Origin: Tetramitus jugosus
Taxonomy: Eukaryota; Protista; Heterolobosea
DNA length: 64,000 bases
Direction of reading: 5' to 3'
Assembly: GCA_937625935.1 (NCBI GenBank)
Contig: OW569358.1
Location: forward strand, 1-64,000
Shown here: positions 751 to 6,476 of the stretch, one piece after another
Layout: the number at the start of each line of letters is the position of its first letter
Numbering within the stretch: the stretch's first letter is position 1
Translations under genes and position numbers: made by a program
Notes under the pieces: generated by a model
The model's input: the letters and a program-made list of their open reading frames with translations, nothing else
The model's database searches: none
What the model was told of the DNA's origin: nothing

Positions 751-871
751 TCGGAAAAATTGTTCGTTGTGCTATTTTGTCGCGATTTGTCCCCAGAAAA
801 ATCTTTTATTGTCAAAATCAATGAATAAACTCGAGGTTTAGTTTTTCTTGGCAGAACCTAGTTATGCAGTT

Positions 872-3208
872 CTAGAGCGAGTCGAGATCGAGCGATAGTA
901 AATACTCCCTTTCTCTTTTTTTTTCAATGGCTTCTACAGATTTTTTCTGTTCATGTCCTTTGTTGTCCTGCTCGATTTCGATTGGAATTCTGCTATCTAT
1001 TTCTTCTTGAGTTTCTTCCATTGTTAGGAATTTATCTGTTAGGATATCATCCATTGTACTCTGGCAAGCCGATAGCTCAGAAAGAGATATTCCTTGTTCG
1101 TCGTTTTGTCTGTCCAAGAATTCATCAATCATAGAGTTCATAGTGGCAGTGTCCACTTCATCGAATTCTTGTGTGACAAGTTGAGACAATGAAAAGGAAT
1201 CATCTGTCTCCTTTGGTGTTTCCGGTAAGATTAGCTTGTTTGGGAAACGAAATTTGGCATCATTTTCTTCAAAATTTCTCTTCCAAGTCAAATCCAATTT
1301 TCTTTTAGTTCCTCTGGGCAGAAATCGCTTTGCTGCACTTCCCTCATTGGAATTGCTCTTGACAGCATAGTCTTCGTAAAAGACTCTGTCAATATACTCA
1401 TCACGTTTGGCACCAACTGCTAACTTAACAAACATACTCTTCCCAATGTTCAGTAATATCGAAGATCTCAGGTCTGTACTTCCGTTGCTATATTGCTGAT
1501 TTTGATTCAATGCATCTTTGCATTCGATGGAACTTTCAGCCCATTGCTTAATGTATTTCTGATGATACACAGACCATATGGTTTGGTGATTCTTTCCCAC
1601 AGCGTTTTTATCTTCTTCATGACATGCTTTACCAAGGTTGGGTCTCATCTCTAAAATTCTCTTCTTGATACTTCGAAACGAAACAAACTTCTTAACTGAT
1701 GAGGGAGATTTCTTTGGGTGCACACTTGATCTTCGTACTTCCCTCAATGTTGTTCGAACTGGTGTGTTGGGTGTTGAAGTTTGCTCTGAGTCCATGTTCC
1801 AGAATACTTTTACAAGATTTTGGGCTTCTGTGTGTTGTTGTAAGTCTTGTAGGCTTGCCACATTTTGGGAGCAGAATATCGACATTCTTTCATATGCATC
1901 AATAGATTCATCGTTGTTCCATCCAACATGTCTCTTGATAGCTTGTCTGATACTATCTTTGATTATTCCGTATCTCAAAATGCTAGTGAGTAATGCTTGG
2001 CAAATATGCCCACTTCTTAAAGACCTCATTGTGTATCGGCATTTAAGAATTTCAGCTGAACTCGTTTTCATGAGATTGGACATATCTTTTGAACTCATGG
2101 GTTGTTCAGATGTTGCTTGAGTGAACAAATATTCTTCTTGAGCTCCAGTTTTTAACTCAAAATTGTTCTTGCTTATCATGTCTTGTAGTGTTCCAGCCTG
2201 AAATACTGTTCTAATATGAAAAAGATACCACAATAGGGAAAAGACTGGACATTCATTGAAATCGTTACTTCCATAAACAGTGTTTCGAAGTTCTTGTCCA
2301 CCAATCCCCTTGTTCTTGAATCCAACATTCTGAACTACCAAGTAAGTGTGATCGTCACATTTCACGGAAGCAAATTTCAGATCCTTGAGTTTCATGTAGG
2401 ACAACGTGTCTCCTCTCCAGCCAATGTGTCTTCCATACATGATAATGGCCCTCAATCTGATTTGAGGTTCTCTATTATCCTTTTTTGCTAAGGCTCTTTG
2501 CCATCTTGATAAATCATGATTTAACAAAGGAAACACCTTGAATTTGGAGTTTCCATACTTCCTGATCAAGGCTCGAAAGAGTTTCTTAATGAACTCTCCA
2601 TACTCACTCTTCAGATCTATTCCTCTTTCCTCCTTTAAGAGACAACATAATTGATTCCAAAAGCAATTCACAACAGTACTATGGCTGTACTTGTAGATGA
2701 CTCTCATATGCAGTAAATATAGTCCAGAAACATATTTGCCTGGATGGAAACGATCAACAGTTTTCAACTCTTCATGAATGTCCTTTTGTTCATCCAACCA
2801 TCCAATCCAACTTCTCCAAGCGTAATCTTGGACTAACTTGGTTCCAGGAGCTTGTGAGAGTTGCATAATATTAATCAATTCCTCCATCTGATTGGCAAGT
2901 GATTGGGTCTCCTCTAAATTAACTGTTACCTCTCGACAGAAGTCATTAGTGTCGCGAATCTTGTCCATTCTTCGAATGAGTTCAACATGCACCTCATCTG
3001 TTATTTTTTTCTGATTTACATTTCTTGCACGAGTTCTTCCTAGCAATGCTGATAGCTCCTCTTCAATATCTTCCATTGTTGAGCCATCCAAACATTGATT
3101 TTCTATTGGGTCATCGATCGATAGGAAACCACTCGCAACTAAAGGATGAACGGGAGATGTTTCTATTTTATTCAGATGACGGGTGAACTCGACCTCAATT
3201 GTTGTCAT
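872..3208 (-). CDS. Tyrosine recombinase/integrase (Cre/DIRS/Crypton-like catalytic domain), 778 aa with acidic C-terminal tail
   Basis: Catalytic motifs in order: R265 (IGWRGD..MKLKDL), K298, CPV (320-322), RSLR (395-398, the HxxR box), HVGW430 and Y439. A core-binding-like region covers ~aa115-220 (APGT..YAWRSW, YSHSTV). AATAAA lies on the minus strand at 810-805. Confidence 0.88.
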   Translation of the reverse strand: MTTIEVEFTRHLNKIETSPVHPLVASGFLSIDDPIENQCLDGSTMEDIEEELSALLGRTRARNVNQKKITDEVHVELIRRMDKIRDTNDFCREVTVNLEETQSLANQMEELINIMQLSQAPGTKLVQDYAWRSWIGWLDEQKDIHEELKTVDRFHPGKYVSGLYLLHMRVIYKYSHSTVVNCFWNQLCCLLKEERGIDLKSEYGEFIKKLFRALIRKYGNSKFKVFPLLNHDLSRWQRALAKKDNREPQIRLRAIIMYGRHIGWRGDTLSYMKLKDLKFASVKCDDHTYLVVQNVGFKNKGIGGQELRNTVYGSNDFNECPVFSLLWYLFHIRTVFQAGTLQDMISKNNFELKTGAQEEYLFTQATSEQPMSSKDMSNLMKTSSAEILKCRYTMRSLRSGHICQALLTSILRYGIIKDSIRQAIKRHVGWNNDESIDAYERMSIFCSQNVASLQDLQQHTEAQNLVKVFWNMDSEQTSTPNTPVRTTLREVRRSSVHPKKSPSSVKKFVSFRSIKKRILEMRPNLGKACHEEDKNAVGKNHQTIWSVYHQKYIKQWAESSIECKDALNQNQQYSNGSTDLRSSILLNIGKSMFVKLAVGAKRDEYIDRVFYEDYAVKSNSNEGSAAKRFLPRGTKRKLDLTWKRNFEENDAKFRFPNKLILPETPKETDDSFSLSQLVTQEFDEVDTATMNSMIDEFLDRQNDEQGISLSELSACQSTMDDILTDKFLTMEETQEEIDSRIPIEIEQDNKGHEQKKSVEAIEKKREREYLLSLDLDSL

Positions 3209-3232
3209 TGTTATTGTTGTGTTTCTAACAAA

Positions 3233-4189
3233 CTATTTGTTACGTTGTTTCTTCGATGCACTGGAAGCACCAGAAGCCGATGCAGTTCTTTTTTTGGTGT
3301 GGAGGGAATTGTTGGAATCCTCTTTGAGATTACTCAAAATGCTACGAACCATTGAAGGAACTCCATTCTTGGTCAACAACTCTTTTTTGACATAAGTGTC
3401 AACGGTGGCTGGTGTAAATTGAGAAATTACCCAGAAGGGAAAATTTTCGAACTCCAAAAGGTTTTGGACCATCACAGAGTTACCCCTTAATATGGAAGAT
3501 AATTCCATCACGGTACTTTTCTTATTATAGGCCACCGTCAGGTTGACTAAAAATTCCCCCACCCGAATCTCTCTTGAAAAAGAATTGAGTTCCGAGCCGT
3601 TGGGATCTCTTCTCTTCAACGTCTTGAAAAGCTCTTGTCCCTCCAATTTGAGCTCCTTTTTCCTGATAGCATACCGCATGCAGGCCACTGACTTCATTGA
3701 CTTACTCAGTGTCTCAAAGTCCTCGTCGTTAAGCTTGATCAACGACCTAGCCTCGTCCGTACCGACCAATTTCACGGTTGTGTTGAGAAGGCAGAGTGCC
3801 TTCTTGATCCAATCCATGCTTTTTCTTGTTTCCTCATCAGGACCCAGGAGGCAACCCAAACTTTCTACTGTCTCTCGAAGTTCTTTGATGGTAACTGCAG
3901 CCTCTTTGAGTTTTTTTGTCAGTTGGTCGTTGTCTTCTTCCTCCGTTATGAGATCTCTCTTGAGTTTCTCCAGCTCCAGTTCCTTTGTTTGATCGTGCTC
4001 TACGAATATTCCTTCCCCATCACGGGTGATGACAACAAACACTTTGAGTTGTTCGTTGGTTGTTGGTAGCAAGGACTCGAGCGAATTATCCAGTGTACAA
4101 GAGATTCTTGTTGATAGTGCTGTGGTAGTTGTAGTGGTTGGTATTGTAGTATGTGTTGTTGGTGTCGTGATTGGTGTTGGTGAGTTCAT
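3233..4189 (-). CDS. Hypothetical coiled-coil protein (element ORF2), 318 aa from first ATG
   Basis: Long open frame. First ATG is at 4189 (the track start at 4270 is GTG). Thr-rich N-terminus, heptad-like E/K-rich segment and a basic NLS-like C-terminus (KKRT..SKKQRNK). It ends 24 bp before the YR ATG. Confidence 0.7.
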   Translation of the reverse strand: MNSPTPITTPTTHTTIPTTTTTTALSTRISCTLDNSLESLLPTTNEQLKVFVVITRDGEGIFVEHDQTKELELEKLKRDLITEEEDNDQLTKKLKEAAVTIKELRETVESLGCLLGPDEETRKSMDWIKKALCLLNTTVKLVGTDEARSLIKLNDEDFETLSKSMKSVACMRYAIRKKELKLEGQELFKTLKRRDPNGSELNSFSREIRVGEFLVNLTVAYNKKSTVMELSSILRGNSVMVQNLLEFENFPFWVISQFTPATVDTYVKKELLTKNGVPSMVRSILSNLKEDSNNSLHTKKRTASASGASSASKKQRNK

Positions 4190-4252
4190 TGGTGATTTGT
4201 GATTTTGGTTTTTGTGATGTGTGATGTGTGATGTACCAGGTAATAAATATTG

Positions 4253-4322
4253 TTTAGGCCACACGCTCACGTTTCAGTTCCAACGATGCTGAATAGGAGG
4301 AAACGCGAACGTGTGGCCTAAA
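4253..4322 (-). other. 23-bp inverted repeat / hairpin with 24-nt loop upstream of ORF2
   Basis: Arms tttaggccacacgctcacgtttc (4253-4275) and gaaacgcgaacgtgtggcctaaa (4300-4322) are 21/23 complementary. Confidence 0.85.
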
Positions 4323-4761
4323 AAAATATCTTGTCTTGCGAAAGGCACTCAAAATGTGAAGTAGCAATCTGATTTTTACAGAGTCGCAACAACAACAGTT
4401 GCAACAGATGAAGCACACCCGATTGTTTTATCTGTCCTATGAATCTCAATCAGAGCCATTGCATCTCCGTTCAATTCGAACTCATGATCATAAGAATGGT
4501 TGTATCAATAAAAAATCACAAATTACAGACCATTTGTTCGATTCATTGATTTTTGATTGATTCGTTTGTTTTTTATTGTTTTTATGCGATGTTTTTGTCA
4601 AACCCGGCTGGAACCCTGATTGCTTGTTCTGAAACAACATGTGTGTTTCACATTGTGGGAGATTCTTAAATTCTTCAAATGGAATGAAGAAAAAGATAGT
4701 AATCATCTGATACCGGAGTGCAGAAGAAGTGTGGTATAATAAGGGCTGTTGCTTACGTAAC

Positions 4762-4796
4762 AACCCAAACCCAAACCCAAACCCAAACCCCAACCC
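4762..4796. repeat. Interstitial telomeric tract, (CCCAAA)4 plus a degenerate unit
   Basis: aacccaaacccaaacccaaacccaaaccccaaccc, in the same orientation as the terminal telomere. Confidence 0.92.
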
Positions 4797-5184
4797 TGTA
4801 AAATGATACTATACTCTTTCATATCTCCTTTCAGTTCTTTACAATTTCATACCCTACCTTCCTTGATGCCTCTTCTCTCTTTGTCCTATTGTATTTTCGT
4901 TTGCACTCCTTCCTTCAAGTTGAACCTTCATCAAAGGAGTTTAAACTCCTTCATCCCTTTATTACAAAATATTTCCTGTCGTGTCCTTTGTTTTCTCCTT
5001 TGTCCCAGTTTCTGTTCATCAGTTGACAATGTCATTCACCGTCGAGAATGTATTCATCAGGCTATTGTATTAACCGATAAAGTATTACAAACAAATTATG
5101 AAGGATTTCAATCTTGTAGTTCAACCGACTCTATCACACAGCATCTTCCTTCAGAAGTTCGAACCTCCATGACCTCAGTTTCAA

Positions 5185-5505
5185 GTTCCTCTGTAGAAAT
5201 CTTCATAGGCGGAACCATCTGGTTCCTCTTAGGCATGTGTGTATTTAGGCGGAACCAGCTGGTTCCACTGAAAAAGTCATATTATAGGCGGAACCAGATA
5301 GTTCCTCTGACAAAGTCAAGTTTTAGGCGGAACCAGCTGGTTCCTCTGTAAAGTCGAAAATTTAGGCGGAACCAGATAGTTCCTCTGAAAAAAAGCTCTT
5401 TTAGGCGGAACCAGCTGGTTCCGCTTGTGAGTCCAACTTTTAGGCGGAACCAGATAGTTCCTCTGTAAAAAAGCTTTTCTAGGCCGAAATGGCTGGTTCC
5501 GCCTA
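5185..5505. repeat. Array of 8 palindromic ~24-bp repeats (TAGGCGGAACCAGMTRGTTCCDCT) with 15-16-bp variable spacers, 39-bp period
   Basis: Units start at 5206, 5246, 5285, 5324, 5363, 5402, 5441 and 5480, with a half unit at 5185. The core GGAACCAGCTGGTTCC is a perfect palindrome in units 2, 4 and 6. Confidence 0.95.
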
Positions 5506-5542
5506 TTTTTTCGACACGCACCAGTCAATAGCTCATAGAGAT

Positions 5543-5568
5543 TTGGGTTTTCTGAGTTCAAAACCCAA
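5543..5568. other. Inverted repeat with 9-bp telomere-like arms and 8-bp spacer (TTGGGTTTT-CTGAGTTC-AAAACCCAA)
   Basis: Arms are exact reverse complements; the asymmetric 8-bp spacer gives a lox/FRT-like layout. Confidence 0.6.
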
Positions 5569-5715
5569 CTCCATATCATAGTTTGGGGGATAGTTCAGAA
5601 TCTACAGTGACATTTTCAATACAAAGCTTAAGTTGAACATTTCAGACCATAAAGAATACAAAAACATCTTTTACAACGTACGGTTGACTGTATTCGGCCA
5701 TTCTTGGTTTGTCGA

Positions 5716-5740
5716 TATGTGACAACCCAAACCCAAACCC
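5716..5740. repeat. Second copy of the 25-bp telomere-junction motif (direct repeat of 4754-4778)
   Basis: tatgtgacaacccaaacccaaaccc versus tacgtaacaacccaaacccaaaccc, 23/25 identical. Confidence 0.75.
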
Positions 5741-6476
5741 ATCCATACTTCCCAGTTCCAATATGACAGTTGAAAAACTCAAGTATGTTCCTCCAGTGAG
5801 TTGTCTCCCCGAATCTAGGAAGATTATCTTCAAGACAATCTTGAAGACAAGCTCCTCATGGCTCATGTCGATACCACAGTGTATGCGTTAATTTGGCTCG
5901 AAGAAGCTTCGTAGAACAACGACTAGAATACTTTCAAATTATTTCAAGGATTTTCATAGAAATATTGATTAATGAATTGATTGGATAATAAAATGACCAA
6001 TAATGAGTACTATGCCCAGTCTCTGGATTATGCTTAGATTATTATAGAAACTGTTTGAAAGAGGTGGAAACTGTTGAGTGAAAAATAATGTTAGCCAAGG
6101 ATTAACAGTGCATTAATAAGAAGAAGCGGTCGAGAATTATATAATGAAAGAGTTTATGGTGCTACCATACTCTGTATCGACGAGAAAGTGCTATTATTTG
6201 TTGTCTAGAACTTAGTAGAGAATTTTAACAAGTTGAATTCAACTCGTTTTGAATGAAGAGAATTAGAAGAGTAATATAGTGTTCTTGTAAAGAAGGAAAT
6301 CAATTGAAGTAATCAAAGTATTAAAGACTCAAGAGAGAACTGGATGAGCAAAAAGGGAGTTATGTTAATTGAGAGAGACAAGAGGAGTATGATTCTGAGA
6401 AGAATTATCTCTCCATTGTATTAGACTCGTCCAAGAAAACTCAACATTCGAGATTTCTGATGAGCTGGGTTTCAAC

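Follow-up and report, generated by a model that had tools for sequence, protein, structure and literature searches.

Short binding motifs clustered inside the ends of an element are known from En/Spm (the 12-bp motifs of TnpA), from Ac (subterminal hexamers) and from the arm-type sites of lambda attP, and in transposons such subterminal motifs are lineage-specific and are kept by non-autonomous derivatives. In the homologous regions (hr) of baculoviruses and in the family of repeats (FR) of Epstein-Barr virus (EBV) the sites stand in tandem units, each of which holds an imperfect palindrome that is bound by a dimer of an element-encoded protein (IE1 and EBNA1, respectively). The sopC centromere of plasmid F, a partition-site array of the ParB type, has twelve direct repeats of 43 bp, and in each of them a dimer of the protein encoded next to the array binds a 16-bp inverted repeat (PMC3177203). 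Here we have analysed an array of eight 39-bp palindromic units and the Crypton-like tyrosine recombinase element that lies distal to it, both found at one chromosome end of the heterolobosean Tetramitus jugosus (GCA_937625935.1, contig OW569358.1); the window is the first 64 kb of this contig, which is contig 15 in an assembly of 26.35 Mb and 56 contigs.

The Y' and X elements of yeast are modular, occur on a subset of chromosome ends with short internal telomere tracts between them and spread by recombination, and to our knowledge the telomere-specific mobile elements found so far are retroelements (of insects, rotifers and fungi) or, very recently, Helitrons of Paramecium. We know of no Crypton that carries rows of binding sites of the kind described below. 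The telomere-capping Helitrons of the Paramecium germline lie at chromosome ends only and in one orientation, with the inner end followed by a short telomere tract (bioRxiv 10.1101/2025.11.06.686955), and they contain internal minisatellites, with many copies that lack open reading frames (ORFs) and have a constant satellite order (bioRxiv 10.1101/2025.11.06.686955). Our analysis of the T. jugosus locus suggests, with a probability that we put at roughly 0.55, that its array is a cis-acting row of dimer sites of telomere-embedded Crypton-like elements, which is kept in ORF-less derivatives of these elements.

The array and its recurrence at chromosome ends

The eight units of the array start at positions 5206, 5246, 5285, 5324, 5363, 5402, 5441 and 5480, the first gap being of 40 bp and the others of 39 bp, and Tandem Repeats Finder (TRF) gives periods of 39, 78 and 117 over the array. 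Each unit is composed of TAGGC, a 16-bp dyad, NCT and a 15-bp A-rich spacer. Units 2–7 alternate strictly between the perfect palindrome GGAACCAGCTGGTTCC (..CAGCTGG..) and GGAACCAGATAGTTCC (..CAGATAG..), with a 78-bp higher order, and the units at the two ends are degenerate (unit 1, ..CATCTGG..; unit 8, GGCCGAAATGGCTGGTTCCGCC). The idealised 26-mer is a true palindrome, and the mean pairwise identity among units 2–7 amounts to 0.92 in the 24-bp repeat vs 0.49 in the spacer. An earlier note on the same DNA had described the array in these terms, and its unit spacing, the palindrome, the alternation, the degenerate ends and the conserved repeats between variable spacers were all recovered here; its further argument, namely that a mismatch in the CAGATAG units becomes a U·G pair on the minus strand, fails for the array as a whole, since the asymmetric core of unit 1 lies in the opposite orientation. 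In the genome the exact 16-mer GGAACCAGCTGGTTCC occurs 50 times, always within such arrays, vs an expectation of about 0.002 in 26.35 Mb and no occurrence of its reversed control, and the CAGATAG variant occurs 59 times, again in arrays only. Among the frames of the window none is open across the array, and a coding repeat (39 bp being equal to 13 codons) was rejected on this ground and because the spacers of other copies show length changes of 1–2 bp.

The window opens with 124 perfect CCCAAA repeats (124.5 copies according to TRF). All 20 contig starts that were inspected open with a tract of the CCCAAA type, so that the contigs look like whole small chromosomes, with about 112 ends; of these, the 20 contig starts and the 22 array loci are covered here. 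The genes of the window are compact and eukaryotic, as exemplified by the proteasome Rpn3 and a TLC-domain protein. From the telomere inwards, the features of this chromosome end are:

4–750, no strand: terminal telomere tract, (CCCAAA)n on the plus strand (TRF and comparison of contig starts)
751–4763, minus strand: Crypton-like recombinase element, telomere-embedded (junctions, tail alignment and relatives with a matching layout)
872–3208, minus strand: tyrosine-recombinase gene, 778 amino acids, directed to the telomere (motifs and atlas features)
3233–4270, minus strand: ORF2, the partner protein of the recombinase (start GTG at 4270 or ATG at 4189)
4253–4322, no strand: single long palindrome with arms TAGGCCACACG / CGTGTGGCCTA (read from the sequence)
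4764–4796, no strand: interstitial telomere tract of 33 bp between the recombinase element and the array module (TRF and junction reading)
4797–5725, plus strand: ORF-less array module of site family 1, ending ..GATATGTGACAA (similarity to other ends)
5206–5505, no strand: array of 8 units of 39–40 bp (TRF and unit alignment)
5543–5568, no strand: inverted telomere-like repeat TTGGGTTTT-8 bp-AAAACCCAA, just past the array (inverted-repeat reading)
5726–5740, no strand: interstitial telomere tract, CCCAAA x2.5, the proximal boundary (the DNA beyond is unique to this chromosome)

The recombinase element begins with TCGGAAAAATTG straight after the telomere and finishes with ..CTTACGTAACAA straight before the interstitial tract, and we read the end of the window as two stacked units, namely an array module and a separate recombinase element that is distal on it. 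The array had previously been placed next to a recombinase module, which holds in that it lies about 940 bp upstream of ORF2, but the telomere tract at 4764–4796 separates the two as distinct units.

The genome has 22 such arrays, distributed over 19 chromosome ends and all with one orientation relative to the telomere, and at the 18 other ends the module is 84–98% identical to that of the window. Similarity between ends spans window position 4797 or 4904 to 5741 and then stops, as every copy of the module finishes with ..GATATGTGACAA, which is followed by 2.5–4.5 telomere repeats and by unique DNA specific to each end; recurrence at 19 ends in a single orientation with such an exact stop supports a discrete module. 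At most ends the terminal telomere borders the distal side of the module, always with the same conserved junction, and the array lies about 480 bp from it; the module of the window, of about 0.95 kb, is without its usual first ~100 bp. Groundwater metagenomes carry the module and the element at 90–99% identity without the unique DNA at 5751–6150, which agrees with the proximal boundary of the module. The distal flank of the module contains a perfect 18-bp palindrome (4934–4951), composed of AAGGAGTTT and AAACTCCTT, which is imperfect in most other copies.

Seven spacers are identical in set and order at all 19 ends, and what varies among the arrays is the loss or gain of units (6–9 units being present), hybrid units at exchange points and point changes; the turnover of spacers between ends that the earlier note had proposed to look for is thus not what the 19 ends display. 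The same result bears on the label of clustered regularly interspaced short palindromic repeats (CRISPR) given to the array in that note. CRISPR loci are prokaryotic and have a leader, nearby cas genes, repeats of 23–55 bp and unique, foreign-derived spacers of 21–72 bp. Conserved palindromic repeats with variable spacers of constant length do give the array this appearance, but it stands in a eukaryotic telomere setting (4.5 kb from the (CCCAAA)n telomere in the window) and its spacers, of only 15 bp, are related to one another. No cas-type genes were found among the neighbours of the array, which are the recombinase, ORF2 and housekeeping genes only, and when spacer 6 was searched alone its 11 exact matches were all inside arrays. 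The search of the array for phage similarity gave none, and an exact-word scan of metagenome contigs of the Joint Genome Institute (JGI) gave only 10 single chance matches and no related arrays. The spacers are diverged and not acquired, as had already been supposed, and we give practically no credence to an adaptive array of the CRISPR kind, nor to one that is processed into guide RNAs. The crossover positions within hybrid units were also considered as a sign of site-specific recombination and dropped, there being only two independent informative events.

Other chromosome ends show further stacking. The start of contig 10 (L040; positions 782, 1274–1288, 1721–1735, 2585–2599 and 3039–3053) has four stacked units on one end, each closed by a 15-bp telomere tract. 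The first is a family-1 module cut in its array and capped by telomere repeats; it is followed by a family-3 module that is degenerate, by a complete module of family 1 and by a remnant, which is a 430-bp piece of a recombinase element, 98% identical to window 4328–4778 and healed like the broken arrays. Apparent contig joints from 5741 to 751, from 5741 to 4328 and from 5740 to 4889 were rejected as such, being explained by short telomere words and by this contig 10 (C10) arrangement. A second terminal module of about 1 kb, devoid of an array, caps about half of the 20 sampled chromosome starts (contig 2, L032, at 834–1812; also the starts of contigs 1, 4, 6, 8, 12, 16, 17 and 19). It begins with TCAACTTTC.. 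directly after CCCAAA and finishes with ..GGATGTATC directly before CCCAAACCCAAACCC, and it has a few isolated palindromes, for example TATCGGCTC..GAGCCGATA, and no tandem row of sites. Past the module, the tracts of CCCTAA x3 at the end of contig 8 (L011) and of the CCCAAC type on contig 48 are variant repeats fossilised at old junctions. A Helitron origin of the modules was rejected, as matches to Pif1 are with internal cellular genes only and the 3' end is ACAA and not CTRR; the Helitron Rep (PF14214) was not found in the genome, which is a weak negative since the control genomes of this search also gave nothing.

Constraint and covariation of the sites

Between chromosome ends, 4% of the columns vary in the 16-bp cores of units 2–7, 20% in the spacers and 32% in the flanks (Fisher test, p = 0.001 for core vs spacer and p = 3e-10 for core vs flanks), the cores being the least variable part of the module, with the caveat that identical cores could favour conversion among themselves. 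The sites that we found in homologous arrays form eight families, whose arms differ by mirrored double changes. In 11 representative 22-nt sites of the 8 families, which were partly chosen with a dyad finder and mostly first seen as TRF arrays at the homologous position, 88.9% of cells pair vs 70.8% after shuffling (0 of 500 shuffles) and the covariation score is 0.539 vs 0.186 (0 of 500); both sides are changed in 5 of 9 pairs, and controls with slid partners give 28–50%. A period of 38–40 bp and the TAGG prefix are kept across families whose spacers share little sequence. Families 1, 2 and 6 are symmetric through the centre, and families 3, 4, 5, 7 and 8 have an asymmetric, loop-like centre. 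Phased sites for a dimeric protein, which was one of the options raised earlier, fit these mirrored dyads in eight families, the kept spacing of 38–39 bp and the least variable cores, and mirrored change as such fits a co-evolving dimeric reader as well as a hairpin.

A structure-forming element, that is, a selected hairpin or cruciform in DNA or a hairpin in telomere-directed RNA that is recognised by its shape, for example in single-strand transfer, in the stalling of forks or in RNA processing, would predict the mirrored changes over the eight families as pairing of stems, with no need of new proteins, and the loop-like centres of families 3, 4, 5, 7 and 8 agree with it. Both strands of the array also fold far better than shuffles (z = −10.7 and −11.8), and three truncated arrays have a break inside the array that was healed by telomere repeats, which hints at fragility, although this count of breakpoints is subject to ascertainment bias, the copies having been located with the array as query. 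On the other hand, stems of 5–8 bp are weak, there is no preference for one strand and unit 1 flips its asymmetric core, while the loopless symmetry of families 1, 2 and 6 suits recognition of double-stranded DNA and both the strict 38–39-bp spacing and the conserved unpaired TAGG prefix would be superfluous for isolated hairpins. A known RNA family was rejected as well, since Rfam gave only chance rows of the mir-580 type at 23–26 bits vs a threshold of 83 bits. The equal folding of both strands lends no support to the processed hairpin-RNA array that had been offered as the other option, and a search for RNA runs that cover this DNA gave none; recognition by shape in general appears to us quite improbable. 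A dimeric reader is favoured by the symmetry through the centre in three families, by the kept spacing and unpaired prefix and by the flipped unit 1 and absence of strand bias; moreover, the element lineage of each site family encodes its own proteins, so that private specificities would come at no extra cost.

In its form the array corresponds to a subtelomeric minisatellite, with a unit of 39 bp, 6–9 units per end and hybrid units that come from unequal exchange, and a neutral one, in which template switching and core-limited conversion keep the palindromes and the copies spread passively between ends, would account for the loss, gain and hybridisation of units and for near-identical copies at several ends, which point to recent copying. 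It leaves the conserved dyads unexplained, the cores being 5–8 times less variable than spacers or flanks, and even families and assemblies that can otherwise no longer be aligned still agree in architecture, spacing, prefix and position. Considering also that every ORF-less derivative seen in the class has retained the array, neutrality is in our view very improbable.

Some spacers contain small A/T palindromes of the AAAAGCTTTT type (window 5388–5399 and 5466–5481; L044, 1099–1110). In several site families they lie about 19–20 bp off the centre of the main dyad, which is half a period, and they may be bending or second-site elements.

Full-length relatives, recombinase and ORF2

Full-length relatives of the recombinase element, known from a second chromosome and from three further public data sets, have homologous palindrome arrays with units of 38–39 bp built into them. 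Their order is telomere, recombinase, ORF2, array, conserved tail and telomere tract, with the array 120–470 bp upstream of ORF2. In the C13 unit, which is bracketed by telomere repeats, the telomere is followed by a recombinase that a healed break has cut, by ORF2 and, some 450 bp further on, by an array of family 5 with 38–40-bp units on GGCCCGTAAACGGGCC; then come AAACCCAAC motifs, a tail ending ..GTATACGTTAAAA and a telomere tract, and no such tract separates ORF2 from the array. In L062, 17 telomere repeats are followed by TCGAAAAATCG.., the recombinase, ORF2, the array, the tail and a telomere tract, the array having 39-bp units on GGCCCACACGTGGGCC (the family-6 site) and lying 120 bp upstream of ORF2. 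L066 has a similar layout, with a 38-bp array on GGCCGTCC-TTGCCG-GGACGGCC and an end ..ATGTGACAA; L061 has 39-bp arrays on GGTGGCACC-CGAT-GGTGCCACC and ends ..ATATGTTACAA, and in L064 sites of GGAGCTCATGAGCTCC flank the genes on both sides.

Several modules match parts of such elements. The C14 module, with 38-bp units on GGAGCTCATGAGCTCC and present also at the C1 and C46 ends, corresponds to the 5' end and array of an L064-type element, and the modules of C11 and C20 agree at 89% with the C13 element over its array and tail. In all families, the recombinase element of the window included, the tails can be aligned, as can the last ~25 bases, and there is conservation, between families and between assemblies, of both the start of the element (TC.. 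right after CCCAAA) and its 3' terminus (..TATGTNACAA before CCCAAACCC). On account of these shared tails and termini and of the matches to full elements, we take the array modules of about 1 kb to be derived from recombinase elements and to lack the genes of these, and the array is kept in every ORF-less derivative seen in this class.

The recombinase element of the window has its long palindrome (4253–4322) where its relatives carry the array, and its arms seem to resemble GGCCCACACGTGGGCC, the family-6 site of L062. This palindrome has inner arms too and overlaps the possible GTG start of ORF2, and a similar one is found at the matching position in a decayed copy on contig 17 (L047, ~5990–6050). 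Telomere-like motifs of AAACCCAAC / GTTGGGTTT follow the array in at least five site families (1–5), often as an inverted pair around ~8 bp (window 5543–5568; L044, 1130–1195; L037, 1070–1115; L043, 3865–3890); the pair has a shape like that of a recombinase core site, but it is internal and away from the ends of the element.

Judged from these sequences, the link between array and recombinase that the earlier note had proposed is real at the level of the family, where full-length relatives carry both, whereas the array of the window lies outside the adjacent recombinase element and is not part of it. Family-1 modules occur at 19 of the 112 ends, with a recombinase gene beside the array at only 3–4 of the 19; recombinase or ORF2 adjoins a family-1 array at the starts of C15, C5 and C43 and in the decayed C17 copy, which repeats the arrangement of the window. 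The array needs no recombinase gene adjacent in cis.

These observations bear on a host factor, that is, on a cellular dimer that would organise subtelomeres as a silencing boundary, tether, origin or promoter/enhancer, the element merely carrying the array. Comparable host arrays are the repeats upstream of human telomeric repeat-containing RNA (TERRA) and the factor-site arrays in the subtelomeres of yeast and Plasmodium. The constant orientation and the distance of ~480 bp from the terminal tract at most ends would suit such a factor, as would the conserved cores of ORF-less copies without a recombinase in cis and the position upstream of ORF2 in full-length relatives, which is a promoter- or enhancer-like place. 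Nevertheless, eight families of half-sites would require eight factors or a loose specificity, several families having only 1–3 copies; family 1 is limited to 19 of 112 ends, about half of the sampled ends carrying the array-less module instead, and the sites follow the lineages of elements and not the chromosomes. A host factor is therefore unlikely in our estimation.

The 778-amino-acid recombinase has no sequence match in Pfam, with no model at threshold, or in the PDB. Its features in a protein atlas based on a language model lie at 0.96–0.98 to clusters of NDC10_II, Phage_integrase, DUF3504/QRICH1 and DUF3435, all of which belong with Cryptons and tyrosine recombinases. Eight homologues, with identities as low as 28%, show no change in the motifs GxRxDT, KxKG, RSLRSG and HxGW-9-Y; RSLR stands at the position of the HxxR box (the first residue being R), and given this invariant catalytic signature the enzyme is probably active. 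Relatives number 57 at E ≤ 1e-3 among 1.84 billion representatives, some distant ones having sub-threshold matches to NDC10_II or Phage_integrase. The genome contains about 25 diverged copies (27–76% identity), almost all of which point outwards and have a contig end no more than a few kb away. The sole well-supported sister pair of recombinases, C13 and P0001 (99/96), is also the pair whose sites, of families 5 and 6, are the most alike.

ORF2 is the constant neighbour of the recombinase in this genome and in L061, L062, L064 and L066. It is built of a low-complexity N-terminus, a coiled coil, a conserved helical domain of ~150 amino acids and a basic tail. AlphaFold2 (AF2) models the helical C-terminal domain well; in the fold comparison the whole protein matched coiled coils only and this domain gave no reliable match. 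The weak structural rows of the domain are rich in helix-turn-helix (HTH) DNA-binding domains (SopB, KorB, ParB), which is only a lead.

A second, deeply diverged clade of recombinases (28–30% identity, P0006-like) has ~10 copies in this genome (L067; L033, 5129–5149; L036, 3045–3065; L016, 2770–2784). It is also bracketed by short telomere tracts, with other termini (..GTATAATTACCA and ..GGGACAAGGGAAT, each directly before CCC), and no palindrome array was seen in it. Distant homologues, of ~34% identity, lie 1.4–8 kb from CCCAAA-telomere contig ends in two other public genomes (L069 and L070); in L069 a DDE_1/Tc5-type transposase gene adjoins the recombinase, and neither of these two loci has GC-rich dyad arrays.

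Proposed role and comparison with known systems

A full-length element consists, from the chromosome end inwards, of the telomere, a TC.. start, the recombinase and ORF2 genes transcribed towards the telomere, the 38–39-bp array, the telomere-like AAACCCAAC motif, a ~200-bp tail ..TATGTNACAA and a short telomere tract. The array of the window would then stand in an ORF-less derivative (4797–5725) that has retained array and tail, on whose telomere the array-poor recombinase element 751–4763 would later have been stacked. Each unit would offer a dyad site of ~22 bp, with arms of 5–9 bp and a centre of 0–6 bp, to two subunits of one protein, and the fixed spacing would result in a multi-dimer complex beside the proximal end of the element. 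This complex would most likely serve the element itself, in end assembly or synapsis for recombination at telomere repeats, in control of ORF2 and recombinase expression, or in both. The sequences themselves show the anatomy, where the copies lie, the conserved cores, the mirrored covariation and the physical link with recombinase elements; the binding of a protein, its encoding by the element (as ORF2 or the recombinase) and the role of the complex are what we infer. As a row of direct repeats would be unstable if its units were crossover sites, we take the units as accessory sites, and crossover or attachment presumably involves the telomere repeats that bracket every copy. The healed breaks in three arrays and the C10 remnant suggest that transposition and break-induced copying may both be at work.

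Some points weigh against this proposal. The co-diversification of sites and recombinases goes in the expected direction but falls short of significance (Mantel r = 0.36, p = 0.11, over six pairs), and 15–16 of the 19 array ends are without a recombinase in cis; the candidate autonomous copy of family 1, on C43, is putative, being judged from the two flanks of 4282–6057. No DNA-binding fold can be recognised with confidence in ORF2 or in the recombinase, and the closest structural matches have Z ≤ 4.1 and TM ≤ 0.42. The module could have spread without any contribution of the array, as break-induced replication primed by short telomere tracts would leave the copies bracketed and in one orientation as well, and the role as accessory sites is an assumption, made because a row of crossover sites is unstable with an active recombinase.

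A broader claim, which we advance only tentatively, is that these chromosome ends are stacks of a telomere-specific, undescribed branch of Crypton-like elements with sopC-like arrays as the private sites of a co-evolving dimer that they encode themselves (ORF2 or the recombinase), whose ORF-less modules would be parasitic at one sixth of the ends and whose arrays would be needed for insertion at or attachment to telomere repeats, or for tethering of the ends. What is new here is that array and recombinase are linked in structure, that the sites form eight families which co-vary, that termini are shared and that the modules are read as gene-less derivatives. If the proposal is true, a recombinase family confined between telomere repeats, in which some members are autonomous and others lack genes and whose dyad sites co-vary in a regular array, would represent a third way for selfish DNA to build chromosome ends. 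It would also provide the first recognisable cis-acting sites for Cryptons, and the mechanism of a poorly understood class of transposons could be tested directly on a single protein and a 22-bp site that nature offers in eight variants of specificity. As to annotation, the recurrent CRISPR-looking feature of heterolobosean-type assemblies is part of a subtelomeric element and not a defence locus.

Compared with the systems described at the outset, the array modules resemble yeast Y' and X in being common to a subset of ends and separated by telomere tracts, but Y' encodes a helicase and is without a recombinase, a regular dyad array or termini conserved in this manner. With the Paramecium Helitrons they share the restriction to ends, the single orientation, the inner end at a telomere tract and the many ORF-less copies; the enzyme, however, appears to be a tyrosine recombinase and not a Rep-helicase, and the satellite is made of dyad sites. 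The elements seem to agree with Cryptons and Ndc10 in the R-K-xxR-W-Y recombinase, in the absence of reverse transcriptase and of terminal inverted repeats and in having NDC10_II, DUF3504 and Phage_integrase as nearest features. Unlike Cryptons, they match no Pfam model at threshold, have R first in the HxxR box and a conserved ORF2, and occur only between telomere repeats, in one orientation and with palindrome arrays, as a rare family.

As regards the sites themselves, the array is like the subterminal motifs of transposons and the lambda arm sites in being clustered near the end of the element, kept in gene-less derivatives and lineage-specific, and its role may be of the same kind, although transposon subterminal motifs are not regularly spaced perfect dyads in strict tandem. 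The viral hr and FR arrays, of which the earlier note too had named hr as an analogue, also have tandem units with palindromes and a binder that, as in our candidate, is encoded by the element, but they belong to episomes, have other unit sizes and are not embedded in telomeres. From sopC and SopB the present case differs in its position at a eukaryotic chromosome end instead of a plasmid and in that no ParA-like partner was seen; the likeness of the ORF2 structure to SopB, at Z ≤ 3.9, is under any reliable level. In its tandem form, which combines direct repeats at constant intervals with one dyad-symmetric site per repeat, the array corresponds to the sopC, iteron and hr arrays, and it comes close to sopC in its eight 39-bp repeats with 16-bp dyads, in the gene for a coiled-coil protein adjacent to it in relatives and in the weak structural rows of the ORF2 domain, which include the DNA-binding domains of SopB, KorB and ParB.

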